64,000 bases of DNA, from assembly GCA_964247055.1 (NCBI GenBank), contig OZ176050.1, forward strand, positions 5,270,001 through 5,334,000, read 5' to 3'. How positions within the stretch are numbered: position 1 is the stretch's first letter; each line of letters opens with the position of its first letter. The position numbers were made by a program, and so were the translations under genes. This DNA is from Paragordius varius. Its lineage: Eukaryota; Animalia; Nematomorpha. The notes beneath the pieces are model-generated. The model had not been told where the DNA came from. It saw only the letters and a program-made list of their open reading frames with translations, and ran no database searches. Shown here in pieces: positions 5,894 through 37,745 of the stretch.

Positions 5894-6470
5894 TTATGAG
5901 TCTCTTTCCCCATCCAAAAATAGAACGTATTTACGCCCAAAATACAAAAAGGTTGATGCTAACAAGGCGGCGGTAGCAAATCTAGTATAAGGTTCATCTG
6001 GAAGGACAATGCGAGAGGTAGCACATATCAAAATTGAACCTAGTTATTATATAAAGCAAAAAATTTAATCAACACTTAAAACAACCATAATTAATAATTT
6101 AATTAAAACGTATTTAATGTATAATAAAAACCTTACCAAAATTGAACATAGTGGTTCCCAACAATGAATATAAAACACGGTCCGCAGGTTTTGGGCAGTT
6201 CTTCAAATGTTTGCTATTGTAGAGGTACATTCCAATACCCAAATGTGAAGCAAATAATAAAGAATTAGCAAGGGCTAACTTATAATCTGACGAAACACTA
6301 AAATTAATTTCTTTTTACTGATTCAACATATTCGGATTTAATACATTAGATAAAAATGCAAAATATCCGGCAGCGCCAATAACAGGAACATAATTTACGA
6401 GCGCATTTTCAATTTTTTCACCATCTACTTTTTTAGGAAATCCTGGCAAGCTATCATCATTTGAAGCCAT
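5894..6470 (-). CDS. 152-aa multi-pass membrane protein, apparently from an uncharacterised invertebrate family
   Basis: Exons 6470-6319, 6297-6137 and 6039-5894 join into an intact 459-nt ORF: MASNDD...NYVPVIGAAGYFAFLSNVLNP...LANSLLFASHLGIGMYLYN..HL...YSLLGTTMFNFGSILI...FGRKYVLFLD. About four hydrophobic segments. Introns are 21 and 97 nt. Absent from the ORF track. Family resemblance is from recall only. Confidence 0.8.
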
Positions 6471-7912
6471 TTTATGATGCGGTGAACTATTATATATAAA
6501 TGAGTCAACGAGAAATGCAAAATATTGAAATATTTTATAGTCCTAGTTTTATGATGAAATATCTTGAGTGTAAATTGGGTAAATGGTTACCCCCAAATAA
6601 ACAAGATTCGGTATTAAAAAGCTGGGATAGCGAGCTCAGAGTTTAAACTGTGTTTTTCCTTTATAAAAATAGGTTATCTGGGTACAAAATCATGGGTTTA
6701 AATAATGTGAAATATATAAATTCTGATAGTATAAATTATTAAGGTTCTCATAATGCTTTAAATTAGCGTACATTACAATGCACGAAATCGGGGGGGGGGG
6801 GGGTATCAAAAATATCCTGATGAAACATATATTGTGTCAGGATTCTCCTGGTGTTTTTTCTTCACGCAATTTGCTGACTAACTATTTTCCTTGAGTCTTG
6901 TCGATAAAATAAATAAATTCAAGTTATTTAATGAAGCTTTTTTATATTTTGCATAAATGTTATATATGTGCAAACTTTTGCAATGGTGTCATTTGTTCTA
7001 TATTTTTGGAATTATATAATTTTAAACAGAACTGGGGTCCCCAAGTTGAATTGGAGAACTGAAGTATGTATGTTGTATCCAAGTATTAAACAGCAAATGT
7101 CGATATTGGATAAAAAAATTATGCTTATTTTGACATTTTCCGCTAAATTGTTTCTAAAAAATTAATATATAGCCAATTTTTGACTAGGTGAGTATTATGA
7201 TATTTTGAAACATTATAATACTAAAAAAGCTTTAAGACATTGAAAAAACACTTTTCCATATAATTTATGCTAAACATATCCATTTCAAAATTTTAAAATA
7301 AAAATTCGTTCTTAAATTTCGTTCTAAATTGTTTTGAAATACAAGCCTTTAAATTTCTAGGTTATAGAAATGTTAAGCATTATTGAATCCCAATCACCAA
7401 AATAAAGAGGTAAAAAAATATCCTGATAAAAAGTATTATATATTCTGATAGTTAAATGTTTCAGGATTTTTTGGGGGTCAAGAATATAAGAAAGTTTTTT
7501 TTATTACTAGATAGCGTAAAATCGCAAAATTAGCACACATTATTCATAATTTTTTTGACCCAAATGCTTTTTTCCAAAAATCTCATTAATATAATTTTGT
7601 TTAGGATATCACCTGGGGACAACATATCCATTTTAGTCTTTCGATTCAAATTGTGGTAGCTGGATTACCCAGGCCTGTTTAAAACTAAATAATTTAAAAA
7701 ATATGGAATCAAATGAAACCATAAATTTTGCACATTTAAAACATTAATGAAACGTATTAAAAATTTGATTCAAGAATACTTACTTGATATTATTCATTTT
7801 TAGGTAAACCTAAAGAAATTTAGTCAACATGACAAGTGTGCATTAGCTAAATTCAAAAATAATACAAATTAAACCACTTTATCTATTTTTATCAATGTTA
7901 AATGAGATTTAA

Positions 7913-8444
7913 CACTTCGATTCAAATTGGGGTATCGAAATACCCCAAACTAAATTTGATTTAGGATTTTTGAAAAACTACTGAAGGAAACGGTCCCAAT
8001 TTAAATTTATGCTTCTATCCTAATAAAAATCACATAAATATGGCAAAATATCTAAATAAAATTTTGTTTTTAAAAAAAAGTTTCATGTCAAACTACTTCG
8101 ACGTCATTTTTATTTTACAAATTTTTTTCAAAATATCGTCTTCAATTAATTTTAATGGTAAAATTAAAGCTAATTTTTTATTTAAATTACATCAAACATT
8201 TATAGAAATAGAAAAAGCGGTTTATTTTGTATTATTTTTAAATTTTACCATTACACACATGTCAAGTTGACTAAATTTTTACCTCTCGGTTTTAGCTTAA
8301 AATAAGTAATATCAAGTATTTTATAAAATATTTTATATATTTCAGTTTTTCAATGTTATATAAGTGCAAAATTTTAACATGGCACTTCCTTCCATATTTT
8401 TAATTTGAATCGAAGGACTAAAATGAATGTGTTGTATCCAAGTG
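7913..8444 (+). mobile_element. MITE family A (CACTT...AAGTG termini, 4-bp target)
   Basis: TTAA|CACTTCGATTCAAATTGGGG ... GTGTTGTATCCAAGTG|TTAA. Fragments of the same family at ~6970-7085, ~7610-7900 and ~8470-8667. Confidence 0.85.
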
Positions 8445-8681
8445 TTAAATAAAAAACTAGCTTTTTAGCTTTAAAATCAAATAAACAAGATATTTTACAA
8501 AAATGTTGCAAAATGAAAATAATGTAAACCAAATTTAATTTAGATATGTCGGCTTATTTATATAATTTCTATTAGGATAGAATCATAAATTTAATTTGCT
8601 TTCTTTCAGTAGTTTTTTAAAAATTTCAACTTACATATGGTCTGGGGTATTTACATACATCGAAGTGATATACTAGGTTAA

Positions 8682-9255
8682 CACTTGGATACAACACACT
8701 CATTTTAGTCCTTTGATTCAAATTGGGGTAGTTAGGTACCCCAGGCCTGTTTAAAATCAAATTCTTTAAAAAGTATGGAAGGAATCAAAACCATGGCAAA
8801 ATTTTGCACTTATATAACATTAATAAACCGAAATATATAAAAAAATTTTATTCAAAAATACTTGATATTAGTTATTTTGAGCTAAAACCGAAAGGTAAAA
8901 ATTTCATCAACGTGACATATATGAAATGGAAAATTAAAATATAATACAAAAAAACCACTTTTTCTATGTCTATCAATGTTAGATGTAATTTAAATATAAA
9001 ATTACTTTAATTTTACCCTTAAAATTGGATGAAGACGATATTTTGTAAAAATTTTGCAAAATAAAAATGGCGTCGAAGTAGTTAGATATGGAACTTTTTT
9101 TCAAAACAAAATTTTATTTAGATATTGGCATATTTATTTAATTTTCATTGGGATGAAGCATAAATGTAAAATTACCGTTTACTTCCGTAGTTTTTTAAAA
9201 ATCTTAACTTAAATTTAGTCTGGGGTATTTAGACACCCCAATTTATATCGAAGTG
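8682..9255 (-). mobile_element. MITE family A copy
   Basis: TTAA|CACTTGGATACAACAC ... ATCGAAGTG|TTAA; reverse complement of 7913-8444. Confidence 0.88.
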
Positions 9256-9267
9256 TTAATTATACAC

Positions 9268-11659
9268 CAGTGATACTCAAACCGCGGCCCGTGGGCCGCA
9301 TGCGGCCCTTAGAGTGCTTTTAAATTGCCCTATAAGCATATTGATACTTATATTTTTTTTTATTGATGAACTTTTAAAATACACATAAACGAATTTTCAT
9401 AGTTTTTATTTTTTACTCAATTTAAATATAAAAAAATTTCCTTACATTAGAATGATTTCAAAAAATTGGCACACGTTGTTTCTGATTTTGTATTCTATTT
9501 TCTTTTCTATTTTGACATTTATATTGCATTCCTTTTTGTATTTAAGCAAGCATTTCACTCAAACTTCAAATACATATTCTTTTCAATGCTATCCTGCATC
9601 ATTTTTTATAACTCATTCCCATAAAATATTTTTCAAAATAACATCATTAAATTTCGACCTGTTTTTTATATCATAATATAATTTATATTCCCAATTTTTC
9701 GAAAAAATCTACATAATAATTAAACATAAATTCAAAGGATGACATCTAATGCTAAAAAACGTAAATTATCCGATGAAAATCGCTTCTTAAAAAAGAATGG
9801 GAAGAAAAATTCTTTGTCGTTCAAAATAAAAATGTTACCTGCCATATATGTAAGGACAACATAATTATAAAAAAATACAATATTAAAAGACATTTTACAA
9901 TCCATTTTCATACCCGAAAATCATGAGGAAAGAAACGAAAAATATAAAAAGATTAAGGAATTATAGGAAAAATCTATTATGTCCATAGCTTTTTCTCAGG
10001 AAAAAGCTTTAACATTAGCTTCGTATGAAATTTGCTATATTTTTGGAAAAAATATGAAACCACTGATTCCCAACTAATAAAAGAATGTCGAATAAATGGT
10101 TGCACTTTTTTTTGATATATTCCATAATAAAGATCAAATCGTGAGGCAAAATAACTTCAACTTTCAGATTCAACATGTGCTCGGCGCATTCAAGATATGT
10201 CTAAATATATTTTTAACAATACATTATTGGCTCAGAAAAACTGCAAATATTTTAGTATTGCTATTGATTCTAGGACTGATATTAGTTCAACACCACAATG
10301 TGCGCTCTTCGTGAGATTTTGCTACGACAACATAATCAACGAGGAATATTTTAAATTACCAATGAATAATACCACGAAAGGTAATTTTCTCGAAATAATT
10401 AGCACTTTTTTCGATAATAATGGATTATGAAATTGGTGATCTGCACAGATGGTCCTCTATAATTGGAATATACAAAGGATTTATTCCTTTTAAAACAAAT
10501 ATAATTTGCAAAATATTTTATCCTTTCACTGCCTTATTCATCAGCAAAACTTGGTTTCGCATGTAAAAATGAATTATTAAGTAATTAAAACGGTTGTGGA
10601 TATGGTTAACCACATCCGTGGCAGAGAATTTAAACCCCGTATATTCGAAAACCTTCTAAAAGATAACAGTGAGTTTGATGATATTCTTTTGTACACCGCT
10701 GTGAGGTGGCTAAACCTTGCAAAGTATTAAATAAATTTTTTGTTTTAAGTTATGAAATTCTATTATCATAAAGTTAACAGAAAATTTGACGAGGAAATAA
10801 TAGTGACAAATAATGGGTTTTATTAGCCTACCTTTGCAACATTATTTATCTTAGTTTTAATACAAGTCTTCAAGGGAGCAAAATAATAACCCAATTTGCT
10901 AATCAAATATTGCTTTAAAAAAAATTAATAATATATAATCCAGATTTTATAAATAAAACACTCCCATATTTTCCAACACTTAAAACGATTCATGAAGAAA
11001 ATATTGAATTTACCGCGGAGATTAATATAATAATAGACAATCATTTAATATTTTTATATAATGACATGAAATTCAGATTTGAATTAAGAAATATTGTAAA
11101 TGGCTTAAAACTCATTTAAAATCCATGGCATATGGATCCAATATTAAGCGATTTGAGCATTTCGGTATTGATCAGGCGCAATCATTAAAGAATTCGTAGA
11201 TTTCAAAAATGATTCCAATTAGGAGGCTATATTCAAGGAGAAACGTAGAGAAGAAAAATATGTAGAATTTTGGTAAGATGTGCCAAATAAATATGAAAAT
11301 ATAAAAAAATGTGCTCAGTTTTCCTAACTGTTTTTCCCTCATTTTACACGTGTTAGACAGCATATTCAAAAATGAAGTATGCCAAGAATACAAACAATAG
11401 CTTAACCGATGATCATATGGACGACGTATTAAGATTGGCTTGTTATTGGTTAATATCAAAATATTTTAATTTTTAAACTAAATGGTGCAAAACGATTAGT
11501 TGGATCATGCGATACGCAAAAAATTCGTGCTGATTTAGAGTATTAATATGTGCATATGTGTCAAATAGATATGGAATATTTGCCATTATGAGGTTCATGG
11601 CCCTCGAAAAAAAAATATATTTTATTTGGCCCGTCAAATTTTTTTGGTGAGTACCACTG
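9268..11659 (+). mobile_element. Decayed hAT transposon (Charlie/SPIN, EPM2AIP1/GTF2IRD2-like transposase)
   Basis: TIRs CAGTGATACTCA / TGAGTACCACTG with degenerate 8-bp flanks TTATACAC / ATATACAT. Broken transposase remnants: KRKLSDENR, YFSIAIDSRTDISSTPQCALFVR, FHCLIHQQ, AVRW, SLTDDHMDDVLRLA. Confidence 0.88.
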
Positions 11660-11696
11660 ATATACATAGTGGCCAGAAAAAAATATGTGAAATACA

Positions 11697-12297
11697 CTGC
11701 GTCAAAATCGGGGTATGAAAAAATAACCTGATATTCTGATAAAAAAATGTATCAGAATTATCAGGGTGCTTTTAGTTTCATCCCTAAAGAGTGTAATAAG
11801 AAAGTGATTGATTTTTGAGGAAAATGCGCCATATTAGAAAATGGCAAAATTTCCGCCTTTTTTAAAAATATAAATTTTTTGGTTGAAAAATGGTTCATTA
11901 TAAAAAATATCCCTAAAATATAGCATAAACTAAATATGAAATGCAAAACAATATTTTCAAAAATATTTTGTTTTTAGCGGTGGGTTCCAAAAATCCCAAA
12001 ATTTTTCCCTAAAAAGCGGGCGAGTTCTGTTAAAACGCAAAAATGCCAAAATTGCGGGATAAATTTAAGTATATTTTTCCAAACCGTTTCCATCATGACT
12101 TAAATAGTATGAAGCACGGTTTAAATAAATTTTTCTAAAAATGGTTTAAAAAAGGTATGCATTTTTAATATTTTTAATGGCTATCAAAATTTAGCATATA
12201 TTTAAAATTTTTATAGTCGCAATCTCGGCATATTCCCGTTTATTTTAAGAGAACTAGCCTATATTAGAAGAGCGTAACATTTTGGGACTTGCGTAGC

Positions 12298-12344
<47 letters not shown>

Positions 12345-12914
12345 AATATCACTTGGATACAACACATTCATTTTAGTCCTTCGATTCAAATTGGGGTAGT
12401 TAGATACCCCAAGCCTCTTTAAAATTAAATTCTTTAAAAAATATTAAAGGAATCGAAACTATTGCAAAATTTTGCACTTATATAACATTCATAAACCGAA
12501 ATATATAAAAAAATTATTGAAAAATATTTGATAATACTTATTTTAAGCTAAAACCGAAAGGTAAAAATTCAGTCAACGTGACATGTGTGCAATGGTAAAA
12601 TTTAAAAATAATACAAAATAAACCGCTTTTTCTATTTCTATCAATGTTTGATGTAATTTAAATAAAAAATTAGCTTTAATTTTACCCTTAAAATTGAAGA
12701 TGATATTTTGCAAAAATTTTGTAAAATAAAAATGACGTCGAAGTAGTTTGACATGGAATTTTTTTTCAAAACAAAATTTAATTTGGAGATTTTGGCATAA
12801 TTATTTTTTTTAGGATAGAAGCATAAATTTAAATTGGGACCGTTTCCTTCAGTAGTTTTCTAAAAATCTTATAAATTAAGTGTGGGGTATTTATATAAGC
12901 CAATTTGAATCGAA

Positions 12915-12962
<48 letters not shown>

Positions 12963-14025
12963 ACAATACATTGTTTTGTTCTTTATATGTGATATATTTT
13001 GGAGAACCTTTAGCTTTCACCAAAAAAATGTTATTCAAAAAAATGTGCGCAAATCGTCCATATCCGATATGGAGAACTTACCACAAAAGTTTAAACAAAT
13101 TTCTTAAATGCAACCAAAAGCACCATGATAATTCTCATACATTGTCCTTTCAGAATATATATATAGTTAATAAATCAAGTTATTGTTTTATCCTCGATTA
13201 TGGACGCATTGTATATGCTAGGTTATGGCATCCAAAAAAAATATTTTTAAAAATAAATACTTTGCTAAAAAAATTTTTTTTAGAAAAGTTTTGTTAAAGC
13301 GTGCATACTATTGTCATGATGGATATAGTATAAAAGCTTTAAAATATAATAACACTTTCATATAATTTACATATACTGAACATTTCTCACCTAAGAAAAA
13401 TGATAAGGTTTAATTTATGTTAAATATAAATAATATTTATTTAGAAAAATTGACTTATATTTAAAAGCAAACGAACCTCTAAATAAATTATGAATTTGAA
13501 TTTATATAAACGTTCAGCTTCATTGAAAATATAGTAATAATGTGTTTTTACGATGTCTAAAGTGTATAAAAATACCGTTTCCATATGCCTTAAAAGAGTA
13601 TGAACTACGCTTTAACAAAATTTTGCAAATATTTATCTGTTAAACAAAATATGTAATTTCTTGGAAAAAATTTTTTGATGTCAAATTAGCATATATTTAA
13701 AAATTCTATTAGCTTATTTGCGTTTATTTTAAGAGAACTAGCTCATTTTAGAGAGCCGAAAATTTTAAAACTTTTGGATACCACTAAAAATTTAAACAAA
13801 GATGTTCGTTTTTTTATATGTAGTTTAAGCTATATTATAATGATAGTTTTTGAAATGACAAAATCTTTTCAGCATATGTGGGAAAGTTTTACGATTTTTG
13901 ATATTGAGCAATCGCCTCGTCAAAATAACTTTTCCCTCGTAAGGCTAAAAATAAAGCATCAATCCTGAGTACTTAATCTATTAATATATATTTAAGTATG
14001 ATATTTTTTATACTCCCGATTGCGT
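11697..14025. mobile_element. Family B long-inverted-repeat element interrupted by a MITE A and (TA)n runs
   Basis: Left end ACTGCGTCAAAATCGGG...TCTGATA...ATCAGAATTATCAGGGTG matches family B copies at 26940-28035 and ~61750-63250. A degenerate inverted end lies near 14000-14025. Boundaries are approximate. Confidence 0.55.
12350..12917 (-). mobile_element. MITE family A copy inside a (TA)n tract, with ATAT flanks
   Basis: ATAT|CACTTGGATACAACAC ... ATCGAAGTG|ATAT; TA runs at ~12300-12345 and 12918-12958. Confidence 0.88.
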
Positions 14026-14619
14026 GATTTGATATAAATATAAGTAATATAAAATATCAACTTTATTAAGAGTTAAACACTTCTATAAAATATCTTTGTC
14101 CGAATTTTAATTCCAAATTTTTTTTTCGTTTTTTTTTTTCATAAATATTAGAAAGGCCAATTAAAACCAAAATAATTATTTTTATGCCTTTTATTAATTC
14201 TTTAATCACCATTTCCTATATATACAATCCTATAATAACAGTTATACGATTCTGTTCATTTTGTAATGTAGATACCTATTTATGAGTTTAGTTGTTTTTT
14301 ATTATCTTATTTTTAGGATATTTTTTAAGTTATTACTTAGATTGTAAAGACGTAATCCATACTTAAGTATGGTTGAGCAAAGTCCCGGCAAACTAGTTTA
14401 TATAAATATGCCAAAAACTAAAATGATAGATAAAATACGTATAAGAAACTGGAATATCTGGGGTTGGAATGAAGAAAAAAAAGACCCATAAGAAAGTATA
14501 TAAGAATCCAATTAAACATTTTGGGTATCACAGAAACCCATTACAAGAACAATGGTGTTTTATATAACGAAGAAAATTGTATTTATATGTCGGGACATGA
14601 TGAAATAAGGAGGGAGTGT

Positions 14620-16494
14620 CAGTGGCCGAACTGTAAACTGTGCCCCCCCCCCCCCCCCCCGAAAGATTTAAATACTGCCCCCCAAAATCGTTGGCACCTA
14701 TTCCTGGCGCATCACTTAGATTCGTAAAGAAATATAATATTGAAAAATGATAATATTTACATGACTTGCATCCTGAGTTTAAAAGTTTTGCGTTCCTGCT
14801 ATTTTTATATATGATGGTTAGTACCCACCCGCCCACCTTAACCACAGTTCTTACTCTTAACGTTCATTTTTAAAATTTAAAATAATTAAATAACTTATTA
14901 AGAGCATGTAATCAGAAAATCAAGTTTTAAAATTTCGTTTTCTCGATTTTGCGTGAGCATTTTAATTATATCTTTTTTATCTATTTGATCCGCCATCTCC
15001 GCTTCAATTGCTAGTAACGATAAATTGCTTAACCTTTTTCCAGCCATCGTGCTTTTAATATAATTTTTAATTAATTTCAACATTAAAAATGTAACTGGTA
15101 AAGTCAAAAAAATAATAATGCTGTTATAACTTCATCACAACTGGCTGAAAGTGTTGGGTACTTAATAATTAATAGCTCTGCAAATTGCGTGGGATTGTTA
15201 ATTTGAGAGATCTCATCATTAAGCTATATACCATGACGTGCTGTCACTAATATGGGCATAATTATAAACCTATTTTACTATGAAGACTTAATTCCTAATT
15301 CATGGACAGCTTGGTAAAGCTTTCTTTATTTCGCTCGCCTGCATGATCACATATTCGTTTTTCATATAATAACATTGTCAACGTATGCGCGGGATACGGG
15401 CTTACCTAGGAATAGCAGCGGGCAAAAAAATTTTAAACTAATTGCTAAAAGTTATATATATTTTCGGAATTCGCAAAAATAAAATTTTGACAGCTGTTTA
15501 GTCAGAATAATAAAATATTTTTTATGGTAATATAGCTTTTTGTAATTATAATAACAGGGCTTCGAACCGGTCCCAAAAAATGGAACTAGAACCGGGCTTT
15601 AATTAAAATTGGAACAGGAATCGATTCCTAAAACAGGAACTAGATTCCGGTTTGAAGGCCTAATAAATTTGTATAAATGTACTAATTAAACGGATATGAA
15701 TGTGCCGATCGCCAAGATTTTTAAATTTTGAGACTGACCCTCTGACAAAATTGCCGACCCCTGATTTAGTGTGTGGTGATATCGAAATTTTATGTTTTAG
15801 AACTAAAAATAAATTTGAAAATAACATGCATCAAAGGTTAAAAACATTAATAATGCACATTAATGTATACCAGCTAACAAATGTTGGCCAATTCACTTTG
15901 CAGTGAAGTATGTGAAATAACAATCATACAGTAAAATTTAATAAATTTTATTCACGATGTATGCATTTTTTTACATAATTATTGTTATTCCTCATAATTT
16001 GCTGTAATATGAATTGGCCAACATTGTGAGTTGGCCTAATTGCATATTAAATAATTAAAATAAATGAATTGTTACATATTAGAGAATATTGTTATAATGA
16101 ATGTTTTTCTGTTTTCCCTCCTTTTTTTGTTAACTATTAAAACTGCCAGAAATTAATAAAGGAACAAACAATATCATTATGGCTAAAATTTGTAGTGAAA
16201 AAAATGATTTTTTTGCTCTCTCTACCTTTAACTCAATAATATTATAATTTACATGAACCCCAAAAAATTAAAATATGTAAATTGTCTTTCACACTACATT
16301 AAAAAATATTTTTTTACGCTATAAGAATATAATATTGCAAATGAGATTTTATTGGTAATTTTAATTTAACAGAGGCAAAAAAACTTTAGGCCCCCCGCAA
16401 AATAAATAGGTGGCCCAAATTTAATATAAATAATAAAAAGGGCCCCTGTTTTGCCTTGGGTCCGCCCGCACTGCTCCCCTTAGTTTAGCCATTG
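14620..16494 (-). mobile_element. Internally deleted hAT element with a dimerisation-domain remnant
   Basis: TIRs CAGTGGCCGAACT / AGTTTAGCCATTG; 8-bp TSD GGGAGTGT / GGGAGGGT (7 of 8 match). ORF 14898-15107 (TLPVT..LKLIKNYIKSTMAGKRLSNLSLLAIEAE) resembles the hAT C-terminal domain. Confidence 0.82.
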
Positions 16495-18619
16495 GGGAGG
16501 GTTTTGGTGTAATATTAAATAAAGAATATAATAAATATATCAATTCGTTTAATTTATACAATTCCTCATTAGCATGAGATTTTATGTTAGCCCTAACTTA
16601 TATCATTGTGTATGCCCCAATAGCGGACTTCTTACATGAAAAAATAGATGCATTTACGAACAGCTCCAAGACTTAATAAACTCTGTACCTAAAAAGGATG
16701 ATTATAATAGGTGGTGATTGCAATAGTATGGTTGGAAATCAAGATTACGACACAATAGTGGGAAAACACGGATTAGGGGAAAGGAACGAAGCTGGTGAAC
16801 GATTAATAAAATTCTGTATGATTAATCAAATGTTTGTTGTGAATACATGGTATAAACAACATAAAAGACGTTTTACACCTGAACTCCCTTGTGGGAAAAT
16901 TAAAAACCAAATAGTTTATTTTATAGCACAACAAAAATGGAAAAATCATAAATGCTAAAACCAAGAAAAGTTGTGACCGCGCAACCGATCAGCAATTATT
17001 AAAAACAACAATTAAAACGCACCTGTTCTAACCCAGGAAGATTAAAAAAGAACACAAATACAAAGTAAAACTAATTCCTTTAGAATATAAAATATAAGTC
17101 AACAATAGATTTGAATTACTAGCTAAGATAGATAATAACTCAAAAAACCAATGGAATGTATAAAAACAATTCACGAGACAGCACATCTATTTTTACCAAA
17201 GAAAAAAAACATCATATAAAAAAGGGTTATCAGATGACTGCATAAAAATAATTGAAGAAAGAAGAAGAGCTAAGAAAAGAGGAGAAATAGATATGGTTAA
17301 GAAATTAAATTCAAGACTCCAGAGACAGAAAAGGAAGGATCTGGAGAAATACTGAAAGAACGATGGACGACTATTGAGGAAGCCAACAGAAAAGGCTAAG
17401 CCTCTGTTCCAAACCATCAGAAAAGTAACAAATCAATACCACTTCCAAACATTAAAATTAAGGATAATGGTGGAAGAATCTTGACGACGGAAATAGAATT
17501 TAAACAAAGATGGAAAAATTACACCAAACAGCTATATAGTGCGCACTCAGGTGCAAACGATAGACAAATTATGGGAATGGGGATGATGAGTTATGTATAC
17601 TAGAAGCAGAGCTAGTAAAAGCTATAAAAGACCAAGATAAGTCGGGAATAGATAATATTCCCTTGGAATTAATAAGAGATATACCGATATCAGTTATACA
17701 TAGATTGTGTCAGGAAATATAGTCAGGTATTTGGTTAAAAAGACTGGCAAACTTCCCTGTTTATCCTAATCTTTAAAGAGGGAGATAAATCAAATTGCGA
17801 GAACTATAGAAACATAGCTCTCATTAGCCATGCAAGCAAAAGATTGCATAAGAAGCATAATTAAAACTTGTAAAGAATTTCAAGTAGAGTTAATATATTG
17901 TATTAATAATACCCAAGCTTTTAACTCGATTAACCATGTCCATTGGCGAAGTTTGGAAGCAATGGGAGTTAAAGCAAAGCATTTAAACTTGTTCAAAAAT
18001 TTGTATGAATAACAAAAAGCCATAATACAAACCCCGGTGGGCAGAACCAACGAAATTTTAATACAGAAAGGTGTTAGAAAAGGATGTTGCCTCTCACCAT
18101 ACTTGTTTAATATTTGTAGAGAAATAATCATGAGAAAAGTAGATGAAGCTACTGAAAGTCTCTAAGTTTTGACAGGACGATAATGTAGAAATAAAGAATA
18201 TGATAAGGTTAGTAAGAGTAGAAACAAAAGATATGGTTTAAACCTCAATCCAAAGAAAACCAAAATTATGAGTTTAATTAGATAAACCTAATATAACCAC
18301 CATAGACGACACCCCAGTAGAAGTAGTAAATGTAAACCTATTCTTAGGCTCTCCAATAGATATAAACGGCTTCTATACGCCAGATATTAAAAGCCGCATA
18401 GTCTTCGGAAAGTCAGCTGCGAAAAAAATGACTAAATTATTGAAAAGTAAAGATATCACAATGAAAACCAAAAAGAGAGTAATGAAATGCATGGTTTTCC
18501 CGCTAGCAATATATGCTCCCGAAAGTTGACTAAAACAGAATGATAAAAAAAGGATTGTAGCATTTGAAATGTGGTGTTGGAGGAGCATGTTGAATATTAA
18601 ATGGCTAACAAGGTTAAGA

Positions 18620-18782
18620 ATGAAACAATAAGAGAAAAAATTAATAGGAAGCTACGATAAAAAGAAAGTTCACGTACATTGGTCACATTTTAAGAAGTAT
18701 ATATGAAACAATAAGAGAAAAAATTAATAGGAAGCTACGATAAAAAAGTTCACGTACATTGGTCACATTTTAAGAAGTATAT
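18620..18782 (+). repeat. Tandem duplication of ~80 bp inside the decayed LINE
   Basis: ATGAAACAATAAGAG...TTTTAAGAAGTATAT occurs at 18620-18702 and again at 18703-18782. Confidence 0.9.
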
Positions 18783-19101
18783 CTTTTGAGAGGATTTGAT
18801 TTTTGGAAAAGTTGAAGGGAAAAACAGGAAGGCCAATGTTAGGATGGCTGGAATCTGGTAGATGTATAAAGGAATTGAAATAAATAACATGTCAAAAATA
18901 CAAGTGGAGATAACTCGTCATTTTAATTTCCAAGGGGTCAAACTCAACCTAAGGAATTACCTACCTACCTACCTAATAAAAAATTTCATAAAAAAACGAA
19001 ATTATAATATTAATTTAATTTGCATCTAAATCTATTTTTGGAAAATCATGCTTTGTATTGTGTTTCTACACGAGGATAGCAAAGTATTCATAAAAATTTA
19101 A

Positions 19102-19656: not shown

Positions 19657-19708
19657 TTAAAAGCATATTTTTAACCTTTTTATATAAATTTTTGATTTTG
19701 CCGAATAA

Positions 19709-20186
19709 ATGGAAGATCAAATTAATCAAGAAGCATCCAGTGAGGTTGTTGAAAATTCATCGACTACTGAAACTGAAGATAAACAGGTTGATGAAAACAC
19801 GAAGGAGGTTGAAAAAGTAGAAGACGTTAAAGAAACCGAGAATATGGAAGCCCAAAAAGAAGCTCCTCTAGTAAATTCTAGTGTGGAACTAACTCAGCCG
19901 ACTGAAGTTTTAATAATGTATATTTAAGTCTGTTATAAATGAATCCAAAGCTCACGTTGAAGAAGTAAAACAATCGATTGATACTTCTCCCCAAGCTAAA
20001 AAACCAAAAATTGATTATCAAGCTATGCCAACAAGGGCATATCTTGATAATACTGTAGTACCTATACTTTTGCAGGCTCTTTCAACAATAGCTAAAGAGA
20101 GGTTTATTTTTATATAGTATAGGCCTTCTGATCCAATCTCATTTTTGGCTGAATATCTTATCAATCATAAGCAAGAATTTGCCTAA
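19709..20186 (+). CDS. dpy-30: Protein dpy-30 homolog (COMPASS/SET1 complex subunit), 144 aa
   Basis: Exons 19709-19906, 19929-20101 and 20123-20186. Spliced C-terminus [31 protein letters not shown]|[16 protein letters not shown] is the Dpy-30 motif. Introns are 22 and 21 nt. Confidence 0.95.
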
Positions 20187-26939: not shown

Positions 26940-28035
26940 AATATCCCAAAAAAATATCCTGATGACCTATATATATATTCTGATAGGAAAATGCATCAGG
27001 ATTATCATGGTGCTTTTGGTCTTAGCTCTTACGAGTGATATAAGAAAGTTATTTACACTTCAATGACAATTTGTGCACAATTTTTAAATAAAGTTATTTG
27101 GTGAAAGCTAAATGCTTCCTCTCTTCCAAAAAATATCACTAATATATATCATAAATTACACAAAAGCAAAACAATATTTTTAAATGTTAGTTTCGAAAAT
27201 CCCAAAATTTTTCATTCTAAAATGGGCCAGCTCTCTTAAAATAAACGCAAAAAATCCGAAATCTGGCGATAAAAATTTCAAATGTATACTATATTTTGAT
27301 ATCAATTAAAATTATCTTATCTTTCAAAAAATGCATAATTTTTTGAAAGTACTTCACACTATTCTGATGCATGATGGAAACGGTATATAAACACTTTTTC
27401 TATATAATTTGAAGATGCCGAACCTTTCTATCGCTTTATTTTAGAGTTTAAATGCTTCCAAATTTTGGTGAATGTAAAAAACACATTTAACTTATAATTG
27501 AGTAGAACGAATATTTAAATTAAAATTTTGAGGTGATAAAAATGTTCAGCATCATTAAATTGTAGATAAAGTCTTATAATATCATGAAGCATTTTTTATG
27601 CGTTTCCATCATGCCAAAGTAGTATGAAGTGCCCTTTAACAATTTTTTTAAGTTGATATTATTTAGCATATATTTATAATTTTACCGTGCAATCGGTATT
27701 TTTGCGTTTATTTGAGCGAACCTTTTTAGAAAAGCGAAAACATTTGGGTTTCAGGCTCACATCTATTAAATATTGTTTTGCTTTTTATATGTAGTGTATG
27801 ATATATTTTAGTGATATTTTTTTGAAGCACTTAGCTTCAAAAAATTTATTTAAAAAAGTGTACAAATTTGGCCATTTTCTGATCTGGACTTACCACAAAA
27901 TAATGATTTTTTTAAATTACACGTGAGGGTCAAAACTAAAAGTACTATGATAATTCTGATATATTTTTCTATCAGTATATATATATATATATATATCAGT
28001 ATATTTTTTTATATCCCCCGAATTTTGACGCAGTA
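26940..28035. mobile_element. Family B near-palindromic non-autonomous element (arms ~450 bp)
   Basis: 26945-27400 (AATATCCTGAT...ATCAGGATTATCATGGTGCTTTTGG...) is mirrored by the reverse complement of ~27590-28030, ending CCCCCGAATTTTGACGCAGT. Fragments also at ~6790-6870, 7420-7600, 29260-29330, 39840-40020, 60540-60626 and 61552-63500. Confidence 0.7.
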
Positions 28036-28441
28036 TTATTTTAATTACATTAAAATTTTAGGTTTCACCAGATCTATTAACACTACTGTTAATCAGCTGG
28101 TAGTAGCATTTAAATTTTTGCATTTAATTCTCGTATATGGCGTTACCTCCTGTTTTTGGTGATTTTAATAATTCAAAACTCCATCTTTTACTATATCTAA
28201 CAAAACTTTCAAACAATGACAGATGCACATTGATTCATCAGCCTTTATATAAATTAACTTAACATTTTAAATTAAATTGAAATAATTAATGAGAGTTCAT
28301 TCATCTCATGAGAAATAATGTGATATTTTCCCAACTTTAAAACGGTATAATTAAAATTTTTATTATTACGAAGGTTTTATATTCCTTTTATGAGATTGTT
28401 TCACGTAAACAAGCATTCGTTATGTAATATTTAAATAACAA

Positions 28442-31400
28442 ATGAGAGAAAACATTCAAGAGAGATTACAAAAACTCAAAAATACAGGTAGTTTTATCAT
28501 GGAATGATTTCAGATAAAGCGATAAATATTATTGACTTAAAGCAAGAAGTAGAAAAAATATTTCCATGCAGCCTAAAGCCAATAATATCGCTTTTCAATA
28601 TGAATGATTCTGGTATTATTTCCTAAAAACTAGCAATGTATTTTGGATCATATTGTTTAAAGGGCGATTTTTTTTGTATCGAGTTGAACTTGCATTGCCA
28701 ATTATTAATAAGGTGCTATCTAAACAAATAATTGATATTATAGGTTTGTGTTTAATTATGGCATTTTTTGATTGTTATGAATTGGTTTAACAAGAAACAA
28801 TCATGTTTTTGCGGTGAAACGACATGTAAACTCCAAAATGACGCTAAACAAATGGTTGACAATAAATTATCTTTTGACGTCCTGGTATTTTTACTCTCTG
28901 GCTAAATTATTTTAACTGGCTAGACTTGTTGTCGAAATATTAATAAATATTATTTATTAGTAAGACTGAATGGTGGGTGCATCTTCATTTTATTTCTTGT
29001 ATACGGAAATTTTAATCATATTGTGTTATAATTATTATAAATTTTCTATCATTAAATATAAAGAAAAGGGTGGTGTGGGTTTTTGACCGTTTAAAAATAA
29101 TTATAAAAGTTAGAGTGCAACTAAACCAAAAAAGTGAAGGTAACCGTACCTTGTTATAAGAGCATTAATATAATAACAGCCCTCAATGAAAATCTGATAA
29201 ATGTCAAAATTTTTTATATTATTTTGTGTTTTGATCTCCTACATATGTTTATAGTAAGTCCATATATATTCTGGTAAATAAGCTATATCAGGATTCTCAT
29301 GGTTATTCTGGTGTTTGCTTCATCCATATAATATACTAAAATTTGTTGCAGCTCAAAATTAGAGAATTGCCTATTTCGCTAACACGTCTATTTTTTGGCA
29401 GATAAATATTTATGTCTAATAGGCAAATGATTTGGCTTAATTTTTAATTATTATACCCTTGGATGACATTAAATAGCCGGATTACATCTAGATCCCTTTT
29501 TGAAAAAAATCGCCTGCTTTTTTTGAATCAAGCTTTTTAAATTTTTGTTAATTTTTTTTTACTATTTTGCACCATAAAAAAGTGTAATACAAATTATTAA
29601 CGTCAGCAATTTATTGATATTAATTTAACCTCCATTAAAAATTTGTGCCTTACAATTATTTTAAATTTAAATAAATTTGGGGGCCTTTTAGCAGATATAA
29701 ATTTTCAGCTGCATCGAATTATGATATAGAGTGTTTTGGTCTGAATATCTTATATTGGTAAATATTTTGAAATCGGATATTAACAAGGTATGTTTTTTTC
29801 AAAAAAAATATTTTTTTACATAAATGCAGCCTAATTCCTATCTTGCGCTCATTTTTATTTAGTATTTAGGTGGGAAAGCTATTGAAGAGCTAACGTATGA
29901 TTCGATTAGTAGAGGTGGTCGTAGCCCAGAACTACTCAAATCATGTCAAGCCACATTCTCCCAAATCGTTGTATAAAATTTTTTATTATTTTTGTGAAAC
30001 AGTAAATTTAGTTTAATTACAGAACCTGGGCTGGAAAATTTTAAAAAACGCCTTTTTATTTGTTTTTTTGATAATATTGATTTGAAAAAAACGGTGACAT
30101 AAATTTTATTATTTGAAAATTAGTTTAAAAATGTGCTTTATCATTTATTTCTCTTATTTTAGAGAGATCCATTGGAAAAAACGAAGATGACTTTAAAAAT
30201 AAATGAAAATCATATTGTATTTACAGAAAAAAGAAAACAGGTATTTTTAATTATATAGCTGCTCTATCATATAGCAAACTAATTCAATCACATCTGATAA
30301 TTGTTGTACCAGAATATAATTATTTACATATATATATATATATATAGAATTAAATATTTTCCGTCTTTAATCACTTTAGATTGTCCATATTTCCAGCCGT
30401 TAGGATAAATAAATATTAACGTTTATGAGTTTTATTTGATCAAGATTTGATACAAAACTGTTTCTCGTGGAAAAATTTAAATTAGTTCCTAAGAGACCTA
30501 TTAATAAAAACTAACAATAATCTTCTTCTAGATTTTGAGGAAAAATAAAATGCCTCATAGCTTTTCTATTTGTTTCAATAGTTTATCTAAATGGCTTTAA
30601 CTCAAATTATTTTTATTAAAATTCCGTATAATATCAATAATTTTTAGAAAAAAACATCTCTAAAAATGTTTTTTACCAATCTGGATAAAATAGCCGCTAG
30701 CTTTTATAGAAGTAATGCAATGGGAATAGTCGTTTTTGAAGTTCATGAACGATGTTTTGTAACACACGCCATATACCAATACAATATGGTAACTAATGAT
30801 ACATGAATACGCTTTCTTATATTTAACTTTCTCTGGGAATATATACCATTTCCCAGGTAAAAAAACGTTTTCCCAGTCAATCAAATTTTCCCAGTCAATC
30901 GTAACGTTTTCTCAGTCAATCGAAACATTTTCCCAGTCAATAAAACATTTTCCCAATCAATAAAAACGTTTTCCCAGTCAATAAAAACGGTTATATTTTT
31001 GATGATAAATATCAAAACAAGATATAAAATTAACTTTTAACCATTATCAGCCTAATATTAGGACATTTTTTATAAAAACCAATTATTGAATGACAATTTT
31101 TCCAATTATAATCCAATGCACAATCATCAATGACTTATTCTTCAAACGTATATTTTTTGGATTTCGAGATATTTATAAGATAATATTTTTATTTTATCGA
31201 TGGTTCGCATTAATATTTACGGCTAACTTATAAAATCTATAGTTACGGATGAAATAATAAAAATTATAAAAATAAACCATTTTTATCTCAATTTTAAACA
31301 TGTCAAGTTTGTCGATAAAAATACTATCGGAAAATTATATCTAAAAAAATTTTTTAGATAAAAATGTTTTTGATTAAAAATATTATATAAAAAAGATATT

Positions 31401-34400
31401 CCAACACAATGTCTTCGCGGGCGGCATTTTTAACTCAAAAAGCACGGCGTTACGCATTCGAAATATATACAGGTATTTATAAATAATTTATTTGATTTTA
31501 GACATAAGAAGGTAAAATACAAACACAATATAACAATTTTTTTAACGCGTTGCCAATATAATCGTTCAGAATAATTGCGTAAGAAATATGAATTTTACTA
31601 AGATTTTGTGAGCATTTTGCATATGGATTTCAAATTTTTTCGCGGGCCGTACAAAGAATCTCGGAGGGCCGCGTTTGGCCACCCCTGGACCAAATGATAA
31701 ATATTATATAAACAATATGAAGTGTTAAATGACCTTTGAGATAAAAATGGCATATTTTTATAAATTTTATTATTTCATTTGTAACAATACATTGTCGCAA
31801 ATATTAATGCGAACCATCGATAAAATAAAAATATTATCTTATAAATATCGCAAATTCCAAAAAATATAACTTTTGTCATAAATGATTGTGCACTGGAATA
31901 TAATTGAAAAAATTGTCATTCAATAATTGTATTTTTATTTAAAAATAATATCTATTCCGCTGATAATGGTTTAAAGTTATTTTTATATCTTGTTTTATTT
32001 GATATTTATATCATCAAAAATAAAACCGTTCTTATTGACTGGGAAAACGTTTCGATTGACTGGGAAAACGTTTCGATTGACTGGGAAAATGTTTTGATTG
32101 ACTGGGAAAACGTTTTTTGACTGGGAAAACGTTTTTTGACTGGGAAATGGTATATTATTTTCTTTAAACCAGCTATATTAGAATCATTATATTATCTAAA
32201 TCAGGAGTAGCCACCACGCGGCCCTCCAAAATATTTCTGCAGCCTATGAGAAATTTTGAACACAAATTTTACGATATCCAAGAATTATTTTTTTAAAAAA
32301 TTTTCTGAAGAAATCGCAATGAACAAGCTAAAAATCCTAAAATAAATAGTAGCTTTTATGGGCTTATGTTTAAAATTTAATAAAATATTTGTTAACGCCC
32401 ATATATTTTGTGAATGCGATCCGCCGGATTTTTTTGTCTAAAAATGCGGCCCGCGAAGCCATTTGTGTTGGACACCCCAGGTCTAAATCCATAAAATAAA
32501 TTACTCTATTTGTTATTTCCAAAGTTTAATAACGGGTTTTGCCATCGCGGCCACTGCCACATGCTTAAGAGCTGATGTCCTCTTAGCAAAAAATGTATTT
32601 AATAAATAGCCTTATAAGAATTTTTCTGAAAATTTGTCATACAGACCAATAGAATTGGACATTCCTTAGGATTAGCATTTAAACTTAACGAACAGAAAAT
32701 CGCAAAAGCCAAACATTTGTTGGAGGAAGTGACAGATCAAACCAAAAAATCGGAAAGCGTAATATCATGGTTCAAATCATCACCGGCTATCAAAACGGAT
32801 GATGATCCTTTAAAGCTTCACGAGGAAAAGATTTTAGATTATCCCCTACAAGAAGAGCAAGAAGGTATACAATCTCCAAAAAACGAGGTTAAAGCGGAAT
32901 TATCAGCATCATCGTTGGATGATGGAAGTTTACTTTTAGAACAACAGTCAAAACAGGATTTGCATGGTGCAGAAAATATTCCTTTGGTCATATCACTTCC
33001 TTCCACACCGATTTCTTCTACCACGCATTTGGAAAAACAAAATGTTCCGATCGTTATACAGTCCCCGACTCCTCTCGTAACGAATGATGTGATGACAATA
33101 GCAAGTTCCCCAAAATCTCAAGAAGGGCCTATTATAGTAATCGTCATTTATAAAAAATAAATGCAGCAAATTTTAATTTATATACCAAAAAACTAGGTCT
33201 ATTTTTTAGATTTCCGCATAAAATTGTTTTGTAAATTAACAGCCCATTAGTGACACACCACCCTTGGAGGATACGATAGAAATTAAGGATATGGAAGACA
33301 TTAATGTTTCACCTCTTAAAGATAAAGAATCTAAACAACAAAAAGAAGAGTATAATAAAATTATTGCCCCACCAGAAGAATTTAAAAGGATTGAAATTCC
33401 TGCGAAGCAGCCCATTTCAGATATAATTCAAATTAAAGATGACGTTCAACCATTTAACATTATAATGCTGTCGCTGATTGGTATGCATATTTTTACAATC
33501 TATAGAAACCATTCAAACTGGTATAAATTTTAGCTCTAATTTACGATATGCTAAAAAGAATGTACAGATTTAATACGGAGATTTGGTAAAATTTGAAGAA
33601 TAAACTATTTTAAAACGGGTTTTGAAGCAAAAGGAATTGATTATAATTCTGTGTAGACTAAATTACATTTATATTGTCCTCGATGATATCCTAGACGAAT
33701 TATTGTAAATAAACTACTGTTTTGAAAGCTATCTTATTTTTAATTTAATTATGAAGCATTTTCCTCCTGCATTACAAATAAAAGCTTACGTATTTTTATT
33801 TTTTTCCAATTGTAGTCTAAACCAAAACATTATTGAAATAAACAGCTGATTTTAAAAATAACAATTATCTAGTGTTTGGTAAATTGTAACAAAGCTTACA
33901 TTTTCTTATTATAATAAACATTAAGCCTATTGTATTAGCGATTAAAATTTTTAGAAAAAAATGACGGAGGATTTTTTTACAATTTAACTTTTTTTTGAGC
34001 ATGCGCCGAAAAAGAAATCATCTTTTTTAATTTGGAATATCTTAAATGCTATTTAAAATATTTAAACTAATTGCTCATTTAAATATAAAAATAATTATTA
34101 AGGGATCATTTCATTAAAAAATTAAATGATTTTCTTTGGGAAATTGCTATAAGTTTGTTTGCCTTTATACTCGAAAAAATTAGGAGATCCAATTTTTCAA
34201 TTCCAAAAGATATTAAATACTTGGCTTTATCACTGAAATCATTTTTTTAAAATTTGGGTTAAATATCATATCAGCCATTTTTTTAAAAGTTCATTTTCAT
34301 ATTCATTTTCGCTACTTAGATAAAGTAGTGGCAGTCAAAAATTTTAACATATAGTGTTTAAATAATATAAATGAATTATAATCTTTTGCAGAGGTGTATT

Positions 34401-34760
34401 AGAGGTGGATTATATTATAAATTTTAATTAGCTTCCTTATTCCAAGCAGTTCAAAATGCAAGCTTGGGTCCTTCAAATGATGCAGAATTTGAGATACATG
34501 CAAATATCGATACCGTTTCCGAATTGACAATGGAAAATAATAGTGATATAGAAAATTGGATTAAATCTCAGCCGTATGAACATACAAACAACCCATACAG
34601 AGTAAAAATTTTAAACCATAAAGATGAGAATTCTCTAAGAGAGGATCTTATTATGCTTATAATGATTCCTTCGTCATCCGATTTAAAATGTAACACAAAT
34701 GATATTGAAATGCTAGTTAATGATAAGCTTTATAAATTTAAAATTGATAATTATGTCTAA
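28442..34760 (+). CDS. Unrecognised multi-exon gene, possibly a PTB/PID-like adaptor; model incomplete
   Basis: Phase-consistent exons 28442-28487, 28514-28612, 28634-~28712, further small exons near 28795, 29870 and 30165, then ~32525-32594, 32645-33136, 33243-33480, from 33506, 34392-34404 and 34432-34760. Segments AMYFGSY, MTLKINENHIVF and TNRIGHSLGLAFK only loosely recall a PTB fold. Acidic S/P-rich middle region. Confidence 0.4.
30842..32154. mobile_element. Foldback-like element with ~380-bp TIRs carrying ~20-bp tandem repeats
   Basis: 30842-~31220 is the reverse complement of ~31795-32154. Outer parts carry 5-6 units of TTTTCCCAGTCAATCGAAACG. Ends TA|TACCATTT ... AAATGGTA|TA. Confidence 0.85.
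31410..31687. mobile_element. hAT-like MITE fragment nested in the foldback spacer
   Basis: GC-rich subterminal motifs ending GGGCCGCGTTTGGCCACCCCTG; left end not identified. Confidence 0.5.
32202..32480. mobile_element. hAT MITE, 279 bp
   Basis: Termini CAGGAGTAGCCAC / GTTGGACACCCCAG; 8-bp flanks ATCTAAAT / GTCTAAAT (7 of 8 match); subterminal GCGGCCC motifs. Confidence 0.75.
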
Positions 34761-35879
34761 TCGTTTTTATATATTTTTAAATGATTTCGTGATTTATACA
34801 CAAAAATATAATGAATAAAATAAAATAATGTGTATGTTTTATAAAACATTTGAATCTTATTAACTAATTTTATTTAATATATTCATAAAATTATGAGCTA
34901 TATATAAAAGGACGTAGTAAAGGCTAAACTAAATGTATGTATAGAGATAGCACAGCAATATTGCATAAAACTCAAATCTTGACTAAAAATTTGTTATAAT
35001 TTGTATATTGATCACGCTTTCTTTGGTTTGAGTTTTTTGTATGCATAATCTATGGCCAAATTGTCAATCCCTAAGGACATAATAAAAAATATAGTAAACT
35101 TATTAAATTATGTTCAACTAACAGAGTGATGGGCTAAAAACGTATCATTTAATTTTCAATGTAAAATTTATCATAAACTTTCAGTTTAATCTTCGTTCAT
35201 ATTATTTCATGGATTTAAAAACTTATTACAAAACATCTTCAATCCGTCATTTACCTTTACAAAAATTAGATTAGTTAATATATTTTCAATGAGGGATTTG
35301 TCATATATTTACCCATTAAACGTTCTATGCGTTTTACACTTAGGTATGATAGCATAGTGTCCTTACTAGTATAAAGATATTAAGAAAAATAGTAAAAACA
35401 TAACATCTATAAGTTAATTGATATTCATAGTATGTTTAACTCTTTTTTCAATTGTACAAATCATAAAATGTAAAAAATTTTAGATAAATTACAAAAGCGT
35501 ATATAAAATTTTTCTCATAAAACTTTTTATTTATTGAATATATAAAGTTACAGTGTTTCACGGCAAAATAAATACAACTCAAAATACAATAAAATCTATT
35601 AAAGTTAATTATGTAAATACTATGCAAATACTTGTATATTTAAATTTTATATATTAAGTTTATACAAGCCGCTTATTTTATTTTAATGCTCTCTAAAAGA
35701 AATCCAATTTATAAACGTATCGGATAATTGAAACAAAAGCTATAAACAATGAATCTACATACATCACAATCATGAAACGATACCTCTGATTCGTAATTTA
35801 GCTCTTTTTTGATAAATTAAAAACATATATATTCATATATTTTGATAAAAACAGCGGAGTTGTTAAAAAAACTAAGAAA

Positions 35880-37745
35880 CTAGCTGAAATAATATAATAT
35901 CATGTCATTACCTTTAGCCTCCTGCCAACCGGCCAAAAAGACTTCGTTATCTTGACCCATAAAACGCAAATCACATCGATAGTATAAAGCTGTAAATATA
36001 GCACTTGCAAAAGTTATGTAGGACATTAGGAAAATTCGCACACGAGTAAAGGGCGACAAAAATATCACATATAAAATGGTGAGGATAAAAACAAACCAAA
36101 AACCTAATGTTATGTATGGTATAAGGGCTAGACCTATGACAAACAATTTTTCAATTAGTTTAGCAAACATGCTGTTGAGAGTGTTATTAGCAGCGTTCGT
36201 AATATCATTCGTTGATTTTGTAAAGTTTGTGTTTGGTAACCCCTTGAATGAATAATCATAAAATGGCTGAAATGGAATAAATGTTTCCACAAATGTAAAT
36301 TTATCTTTATCCTGAAAATACTTTTTTGCATTCAGATTATCTCCGTCGGATTCATTTGAAGAGGAATTAGATTTTAGATATTTATCAGGACTCTCCCTGC
36401 AATACTTATATTGATTCTGTAATATACGATCCTTTGAGGACCACAGTGAACGACACCAATTGACTAGATGATTTTCATTCAAATATTTCGTATGTGACGT
36501 TATGCCATATTTAGTCGTAAAAGTATTATTGTAATCGTTTTTACCATTGCATGTTATTTCATTCGTGTTCCCTTCATTTTCTGTAATTTTAAACAAAATA
36601 GGATGCATAAAGAAAGGCTAAAAGAAAATTAGGTCATTATAGGTAGGTATGTATAGAAAAACATTCAAAAGATATTATTGTTAATACAATCCAAACTTGA
36701 AGTAAATAATAATATAAAAGCACTATATAATACCAGATGAAAAAAGGTCTGCGAGATAAACATTGCGACAACTGAATTTAACTACTCCAGGATATTGACC
36801 ACGAATAAAACCATATTCCGTGCAAGGGGAATCAACCAGTTCATCGCGCTCAGACCATCCACATGCCATTCTTGGTGCTAGATTGTGTACTTTGGAATAT
36901 GCATTATCGTGAAAAATATTTCGTTGGAAAAATGCCGTTTTTTCATTGAGAAAATTTGATTTGTGATGATAACTTACGGTAACATCAATTATTTTATCTA
37001 AATGATACTCTAAAAATTATTTAAACTGTGATTTTACTATTATGCATTTCTTTTATCATATAGGTAAGCCCTGTCGTACGAGGTTGCAACAAGTAATTAT
37101 ATATAGGTAAATTATGTTTTTTAGAGTATTCTTTGCTTTTTTGAATATTATTTGGGCTAAAATCGGTGCCTTCTGGAAATAAAACAATCTAAAAAATTAT
37201 AATTAAAAAACTTTGCATGGATAGTTTAATGATGCAAAGTATTCAATGGTTTGTGATAATATATGTTGGTCTTGTTCCCATTTTCGGTTAATAAAGATAA
37301 AGTTTGCCATTTGCATTGCCCACCCTAGAGTAAAATAAAAAAAACCTGCACCAGGCAAAGTTTTCAATGGAGCTTTTAAAACAATTTTATGGTTCAAGAG
37401 AATTCCCATTCTGAATAAGCATGACCAAAAAAACAACCAATCCACACGACTGTAGTGATTCATCAAAATTAGCGTGGTTTCAGAATCGGTAAATGATAAA
37501 TTGGGATCAATTTCCAATACTACCGTTATTCCAAGAAAATTTTCGATTAAGGCCTAAAAATTAAGATCCTTTACCACAACAAAGAGAAACCATAAATATA
37601 CTATTACATCCACAAGCTTTCGATATATAGAGGGATATATGAATACAAGGCATAAAAATGGTAATAAAAAGAATACGGCGCCAAAAAAACTAGTTAAAAA
37701 CAAGGATAATACAAAAACTACACCTTTGAACTGTCTAATATACAT
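35880..37745 (-). CDS. LCLAT1: Lysocardiolipin acyltransferase 1 (LCLAT1/AGPAT8-like)
   Basis: Exons 37745-37575, 37553-37346, 37324-37212, 37188-37038, 37009-36734 and 36580-35880 are all phase-consistent. Motifs LMNHYSRVDWLFFW, LKTLPGAG|WAMQ, LFPEGTD, QPRTTG, DVTVSY, NWCRSLWSSKD. Introns are 21, 21, 23, 28 and ~153 nt. Confidence 0.92.

Follow-up and report, generated by a model that had tools for sequence, protein, structure and literature searches.

Putative ultra-short spliceosomal introns in a repeat-rich hairworm locus that also carries kilobase introns

Can the spliceosome of an animal remove introns of 21-28 nucleotides (nt), a length near the physical lower limit for this machinery and among animals published mainly for dicyemids, from a genome that also contains introns of 1.9 kilobases (kb)? 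The question is raised by a stretch of 64,000 nt from the hairworm Paragordius varius (contig OZ176050.1, positions 5,270,001-5,334,000; below called the window, with positions counted from its first base). In this window the first-pass annotation had marked eleven GT-AG segments of 21-28 nt: seven as introns needed to restore conserved proteins, in the genes LCLAT1 and dpy-30 and at 6298-6318, and four as further phase-consistent candidates. The coordinates, lengths and GT-AG ends of all eleven segments proved to be as described. Six of them, four in LCLAT1 and two in dpy-30, are very probably real spliceosomal introns, and the hairworms would then very probably be a new animal lineage with spliceosomal introns of this extreme size.

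Probable tiny introns in LCLAT1 and their counterparts in Gordionus

The LCLAT1-type acyltransferase gene lies on the minus strand at 35.9-37.7 kb of the window. Its exon 1 (37575-37745) begins at the ATG of the spliced open reading frame (ORF) and is followed by intron 1 (37554-37574; 21 nt, phase 0), by exon 2 (37346-37553), which contains the NHxxxxD acyltransferase motif and matches the Pfam family Acyltransferase (PF01553, E 5e-10), and by intron 2 (37325-37345; 21 nt, phase 1). Exon 3 (37212-37324), intron 3 (37189-37211; 23 nt, phase 0) and exon 4 (37038-37188) come next, both exons being defined by alignment and by the spliced ORF, and intron 4 (37010-37037; 28 nt, phase 1) separates exon 4 from exon 5 (36734-37009), which was placed by tblastn and the spliced ORF. 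These four putative introns all have GT-AG ends and were delimited by alignment to homologues and by an intron of the horsehair worm Gordionus at each site. Introns 1-4 are tiny, and a fifth, putative one is longer (36581-36733; 153 nt, phase 1); a single GT-AG choice was tried here, and with it the reading frame runs on through the last exon. That exon (35880-36580) includes the stop codon and was identified by a tblastn match to residues 275-433 of the Gordionus protein (P0151) and by the spliced ORF.

Subtraction of the four tiny introns and the putative 153-nt intron leaves a complete ORF of 539 amino acids, from ATG to stop. If kept, intron 1 would introduce an in-frame stop and introns 3 and 4 would each shift the frame; intron 2 has no stop. 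The junctions FLFVV/ALIE, PGAG/WAMQ, YPCK/IVLFPEG and KEMHNK/YHLD were all free of gaps in a MAFFT alignment with 13 metazoan homologues, in agreement with the earlier description of PGAG/WAMQ as an exact conserved junction. Retention of 37325-37345 would place seven extra residues inside PGAGWAMQ, the motif that is best conserved in the enzyme, where none of the 13 homologues has an insertion. When the unspliced DNA was compared with the Gordionus protein by tblastn, seven-residue insertions appeared exactly at introns 1 and 2, and the frame was lost at intron 3.

When LCLAT1 exon 2 was compared with 1.84 billion representative proteins, the best match was to a protein of Gordionus sp. m RMFG-2023, with 68% identity (E 7e-31), all others reaching at most 53%. 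It is annotated as 'lysocardiolipin acyltransferase 1-like' (XP_065314340.1) and is encoded at the Gordionus locus L001. The complete spliced product of the window was 54% identical to Gordionus LCLAT1 (P0151) over 297 amino acids (E 5e-107). Mapping of the Gordionus LCLAT1 protein onto L001 was used to place the introns of that gene, and all four tiny introns of the window were found to share both codon position and phase (0, 1, 0 and 1) with a Gordionus intron. The lengths at these shared sites are 21, 21, 23 and 28 nt in the window and 57 (L001:16636-16692), 44, approximately 1,490 and approximately 6,600 nt in Gordionus. Since GT...AG pairs with a spacing of 21-28 nt begin at just 1.2-1.3% of the positions in the window, the coincidence of four such segments with four orthologous intron sites lies far beyond chance, and we consider this match the strongest evidence that the LCLAT1 segments are introns. 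Gordionus has no intron at the site of the 153-nt intron of the window.

Both the closest LCLAT1 homologue and the four shared intron positions are thus those of Gordionus, as expected of nematomorph DNA; a search for further hairworm LCLAT1 sequences or transcripts found none beyond Gordionus. The four segments may be shrunken forms of older, longer introns, or else Gordionus may have expanded its own. The two hairworms would offer a natural comparison of intron shrinkage at identical sites, from 57 to 21 nt, from 44 to 21 nt and from 6.6 kb to 28 nt.

Two further observations concern this gene. Compared with Gordionus and other animals, exon 5 of the window encodes about 29 additional residues, which lie between its conserved motifs DVTVSYH and PCTE. 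A 42-nt in-frame GT-AG segment in this exon was considered as an intron and rejected, its G + C content (about 45%, estimated by eye) being unlike that of all the others; the additional residues are more likely a lineage-specific insertion. In Gordionus, the RefSeq isoform X2 (P0001) lacks a 39-nt GT...AG segment of exon 2 (L001:16758-16796) that isoform X1 (P0151) contains, and with it the NHxxxxD acyltransferase motif. If supported by RNA, this isoform would be a case of a hairworm spliceosome cutting 39 nt out of the interior of an exon; an artefact of the gene model would explain it equally well.

The probable dpy-30 introns and the remaining segments

The second gene with tiny introns is dpy-30, on the plus strand at 19.7-20.2 kb. 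Exon 1 (19709-19906), taken from the ORF list and the spliced product, starts with an ATG and encodes an acidic, non-conserved N-terminal part. It is followed by intron 1 (19907-19928; 22 nt, phase 0, GT-AG) and by exon 2 (19929-20101), which covers positions 1-24 of the 42 positions of the Pfam Dpy-30 profile and residues 37-75 of human DPY30. After intron 2 (20102-20122; 21 nt, phase 2, GT-AG, with an in-frame stop if kept), exon 3 (20123-20186, including the stop codon) covers profile positions 26-42 (E 1e-5) and human residues 77-95 with its matching part, 20124-20183. The codon split by intron 2 encodes an arginine, which corresponds to profile position 25 and to human residue 76. The junction AKER/PSDP, the other one that had been called exact, is indeed so, because this split-codon arginine supplies precisely the position that is missing between the two matches, in the profile as well as in the human protein.

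The spliced dpy-30 product has 144 amino acids; the gene is tiny and so are both of its introns. For intron 1, which lies in the non-conserved region, the evidence is frame logic: 19907-19928 is, on a reading of the sequence in which stop codons limit the choice, the sole GT-AG pair able to join the two open frames. A search for a hairworm orthologue of dpy-30 returned a contig from a coral metagenome as its sole match (L002; ENA ERZ922781). This contig has two ORFs with the Dpy-30 motif, the first of which stops just after ...LSKER, the same point at which intron 2 interrupts the gene in the window. It suggests that the position of intron 2 may be old and widely shared.

The segment 6298-6318, on the minus strand, is a probable 21-nt GT-AG intron (phase 2) of a gene whose product is a small membrane protein (exons 6319-6470 and 6114-6297). 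Its removal joins an ORF that starts with ATG to a second ORF and gives a protein of 111 amino acids with hydrophobic stretches, so that frame logic is the argument by which it is probably an intron.

The four extra candidates are all on the plus strand. The pair 28488-28513 (26 nt) and 28613-28633 (21 nt) yields a spliced ORF of merely 81 amino acids that belongs to no recognised family. After splicing of 33481-33505 (25 nt) the ORF runs on for 22 codons, and upstream of the junction created by removal of 34405-34431 (27 nt) 11 codons are open. The earlier view of these four as phase-consistent introns could not be upheld, as they join only short or unidentifiable ORFs and have no support from homology. 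We think it likely that they are chance GT...AG pairs in AT-rich DNA: such pairs are common at the frequency given above, and control dinucleotides bridge ORFs in this window as often as GT-AG does. Against a chance origin speaks the length of the ORFs 32630-33157 and 34428-34757, which are long for DNA of 25-31% G + C.

Sequencing reads add to this point. The runs searched were X1-X4, which carry one organism label, X5 (organism B) and X11, which carry other labels, and X6-X8, which are labelled as RNA and as the same species as the genome. Relative to the window, the DNA of organism B has a 3-nt insertion (TCA) at 33055, inside the ORF 32630-33157, and a 3-nt deletion at 34361. Its contig is identical to the window over 33481-33505 and hence uninformative at that candidate. 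The insertion at 33055 keeps the frame, and a real gene may lie there; the in-frame differences of organism B would fit a protein-coding gene of no recognised family at 32.6-34.8 kb.

Intron anatomy and alternative explanations

The flanking exons have a G + C content of 32%, whereas the seven tiny introns (those of LCLAT1 and dpy-30 together with 6298-6318) have 9-24%, with C making up just 3%. Their bodies consist of 50% T and 34% A (n = 7). Donors read GTAAA, GTTTT or GTTTA, and the acceptors are TTTAG in four cases and TTAAG, TATAG and TCTAG in one each. The sequence TTAAT occurs in four of the seven, in two of these 10-11 nt ahead of the 3' end, and is a possible branch site. A length of 21 nt is shared by four of the seven, and three of these four contain an in-frame stop; the mode of 21 nt proposed for the class agrees with these counts, as a value that rests on four of seven introns.

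From the homology and frame evidence given above, we regard the four LCLAT1 segments, the two dpy-30 segments and probably 6298-6318 as highly likely to be genuine spliceosomal introns of the U2-type GT-AG class, in the nuclear genome of a nematomorph. Under the mechanism that we propose, ancestral introns would have shrunk, and the resulting tiny introns would be removed through intron definition on a very short substrate. The donor of this substrate would read GTWWW and its acceptor YAG or AAG; its body would be rich in T (9-24% G + C) and, in some of the introns, would contain the branch-like TTAAT approximately 8-11 nt ahead of the acceptor. Such introns would be placed in the 5' part of a gene or in tiny genes, and the longer introns of the same window (71 nt to 1.9 kb) would be spliced in the usual way. 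On balance we favour, with less assurance, the broader view that this lineage of hairworms has a discrete class of 21-28-nt introns, concentrated in tiny genes and at the 5' end of genes, which exists beside kilobase introns and has shrunk from longer ancestors.

Several observations weigh against these interpretations. The RNA-labelled runs X6-X8 share a fraction of 0.00 of the sampled words with the genome, and splicing was thus unobserved. A blind count of bridged ORFs over the window gave GT-AG no excess over the control dinucleotides; such a count is uninformative in DNA of 29% G + C, and since it fails to separate GT-AG from the controls the case rests on homology. The segment 37325-37345 leaves the frame intact and lacks a stop, and on sequence alone it could be retained. 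Seven cases, a number too small for the definition of a motif, are the basis for the 5' bias as well as for the branch point. Finally, the gene at 6298-6318 has alternative GT-AG solutions of 30 and 66 nt that also join the frames, and no significant homologue of its product was found in Pfam, in a word-indexed protein search or in the PDB. The earlier statement that seven introns restore conserved proteins accordingly stands for the four of LCLAT1, by alignment and by comparison with Gordionus, and for the two of dpy-30, and for 6298-6318 no support for conservation was found. In an Atlas search the same product resembled, and only weakly, small membrane proteins of mitochondria (score 0.64), and its identification as SDHD was a guess that none of the Pfam, protein, PDB and Atlas searches supported.

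As to the RNA-labelled runs, alignment of X6-X8 at 80% likeness to 32500-38400 gave three or four spurious pieces of 35-53 nt, below 90% identity and with flanks that did not match. These runs come from another organism than that of the genome, or one too diverged from it; their species label probably covers a different or cryptic species.

The alternative that survives best, although we consider it very unlikely, is that the segments stay in the RNA, either in decaying gene copies or as tolerated insertions, with 37325-37345 being translated. The open frame of that one segment is compatible with it, and so is the lack of matching data from the RNA-labelled runs. Retention of six of the seven segments would, however, stop or shift the frame, yet the LCLAT1 exons are open and conserved over 539 amino acids. 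GT-AG ends are present in all seven, four lie at orthologous intron sites, and the insertion that translation of 37325-37345 would cause in PGAGWAMQ is seen in no homologue.

Still less probable is an artefact by which the assembler collapsed longer introns or created short insertions. The DNA of organism B matches the window at 95-99%, yet it covers 37031-37424 too sparsely for a comparison of insertions and deletions in the LCLAT1 introns, which leaves some room for this view. Against it, all 65 of 65 sampled 31-mers of the dpy-30 stretch, both introns included, were found in DNA run X1, and therefore the short form is present in read-derived contigs. The DNA runs X2, X3, X5 and X11 contained 45-85% of the sampled dpy-30 words, and for the LCLAT1 stretch the share of words present in X1 was 76%. 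Least credible of all is excision at the level of DNA, like that of the internal eliminated sequences of ciliates, or skipping in translation, for which the small size of the segments is the only point: their ends are GT-AG and not TA, they agree in position and phase with ordinary spliceosomal introns of a related animal, and they are present in the DNA contigs of the searched runs.

Genomic setting and comparison with known systems

The description of the window as a repeat-rich region with kilobase introns was borne out. By domain matches, the minus strand at 675-3753 carries a long interspersed nuclear element that has both reverse transcriptase and endonuclease, and fragments of Ty3/gypsy RNase H lie near 24 kb. 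The kinesin gene at 49.5-59.7 kb (minus strand) contains a GT-AG intron of 1,863 nt (57487-59349), across which the Pfam Kinesin profile is continuous at positions 83/84, and one of 1,883 nt (53256-55138; phase 2, GT-AG), across which it is continuous at 295/296. The window also has a 71-nt intron (49701-49771) and several introns of roughly 100-400 nt. No micro-introns were found in the kinesin motor domain, where the introns range from about 100 nt to 1.9 kb; tiny and kilobase introns thus coexist in the window, yet in different genes. The first coding exon of kinesin was sought at 59650-60400 (minus strand) and not found. The motor domain begins with ...RVKPIPAQQ right after a possible acceptor, and hence a short 5' exon, perhaps with another small intron, may lie upstream.

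The G + C content of the window is approximately 29% overall and 24-37% per 2 kb, uniformly AT-rich. A WD-repeat gene is located at 44.5-47.4 kb. No genes for small nuclear RNA or transfer RNA, nor any other Rfam family, were detected within the 64 kb. A family of short repeats with a very high copy number is represented at 37819-38400; in organism B its word depth in the DNA run exceeds 10,000, where single-copy sequence has approximately 4-6. ORFs of this family with near-identical translations occur in three copies, at 7974-8267 (plus strand), 12576-12859 (minus strand) and 37953-38156 (plus strand). A tandem repeat at 31900-32190, open on both strands, has the plus-strand translation WENV(S/F/L)IDWENV....

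If the tiny introns are what they appear to be, introns below 30 nt would have arisen independently in another group of animals, in a large, transposon-rich genome, and one metazoan spliceosome would handle both extremes of length. Many aligners and gene predictors use a minimum intron length at or above 21-28 nt. Standard gene finders and surveys of the BUSCO type would then break on genes such as these, and the 'loss of universal genes' reported for hairworms might in part be due to annotation.

The Gordionus genome paper reports 26.9% G + C (AT-rich, as is the window with its approximately 29%), 63.8% repeats and a BUSCO score of 71.6%; introns are never mentioned in it, nor in the comparative hairworm preprint. 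Minimum intron settings may affect hairworm annotations, completeness scores such as that of Gordionus, and claims of gene loss. Our literature search on intron sizes in Nematomorpha found none; a prior mention is possible, the hairworm genome paper of Cunha et al. (2023) being outside its coverage. Introns of this kind are known from dicyemids, ciliates and nucleomorphs, and what appears to be new is the lineage, together with the presence of long introns beside the tiny ones.

Tiny introns occur in Paramecium (approximately 25 nt), in Stentor (15-16 nt) and in the Bigelowiella nucleomorph (18-21 nt). The introns of the window resemble them in length range, AT-rich body and GT-AG ends. In Paramecium, in-frame stops have been reported in introns whose length is a multiple of three, and in the window three of the four introns of such length have one. 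Those organisms are, however, protists, or the nucleus in question is an organelle-like relic, and their introns are uniformly tiny, whereas here the host is an animal that has long introns as well.

Among animals, the orthonectid Intoshia linei is also a parasite with shortened introns, for which a median of 57 base pairs (bp) is cited (Mikhailov et al. 2016, cited in PMC6543705). Its introns are closer to the 44- and 57-nt introns of Gordionus than to the 21-28-nt ones of the window. The nearest parallel is provided by the dicyemids, whose introns have a median length of 27 bp, two thirds being shorter than 30 bp (PMC6543705). For Dicyema japonicum a mean intron length of 38 bp, a genome of 67.5 Mb with approximately 5,000 genes and a repeat content of approximately 49% have been reported (PMC6736024). 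The first-pass list of known cases (ciliates, chlorarachniophyte nucleomorphs and dicyemids) is a fair one; the contrast that it drew from repeat richness does not hold by itself, given that dicyemid figure. Dicyemids and the window have in common a parasitic animal host, nuclear GT-AG introns below 30 nt (most of the introns in dicyemids), conserved intron positions and a repeat-rich genome. To judge from its title, which reads 'conservative exon/intron structure', the dicyemid study of Ogino et al. (2010; cited in PMC6543705) concerns such conservation.

Other traits set the two apart. Splicing in dicyemids is backed by transcriptomes, while the introns of the window were read from DNA sequence. 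Dicyemids belong to the Spiralia and the organism of the window to the Ecdysozoa. Dicyemid introns are short as an entire population; within the window, seven tiny introns stand beside others of 71, 153, 1,863 and 1,883 nt and several of roughly 100-400 nt, and do not form the majority below 30 nt that is typical of dicyemids. Tiny introns in an ecdysozoan with kilobase introns and abundant retroelements would separate the miniaturisation of introns from the compaction of genomes.

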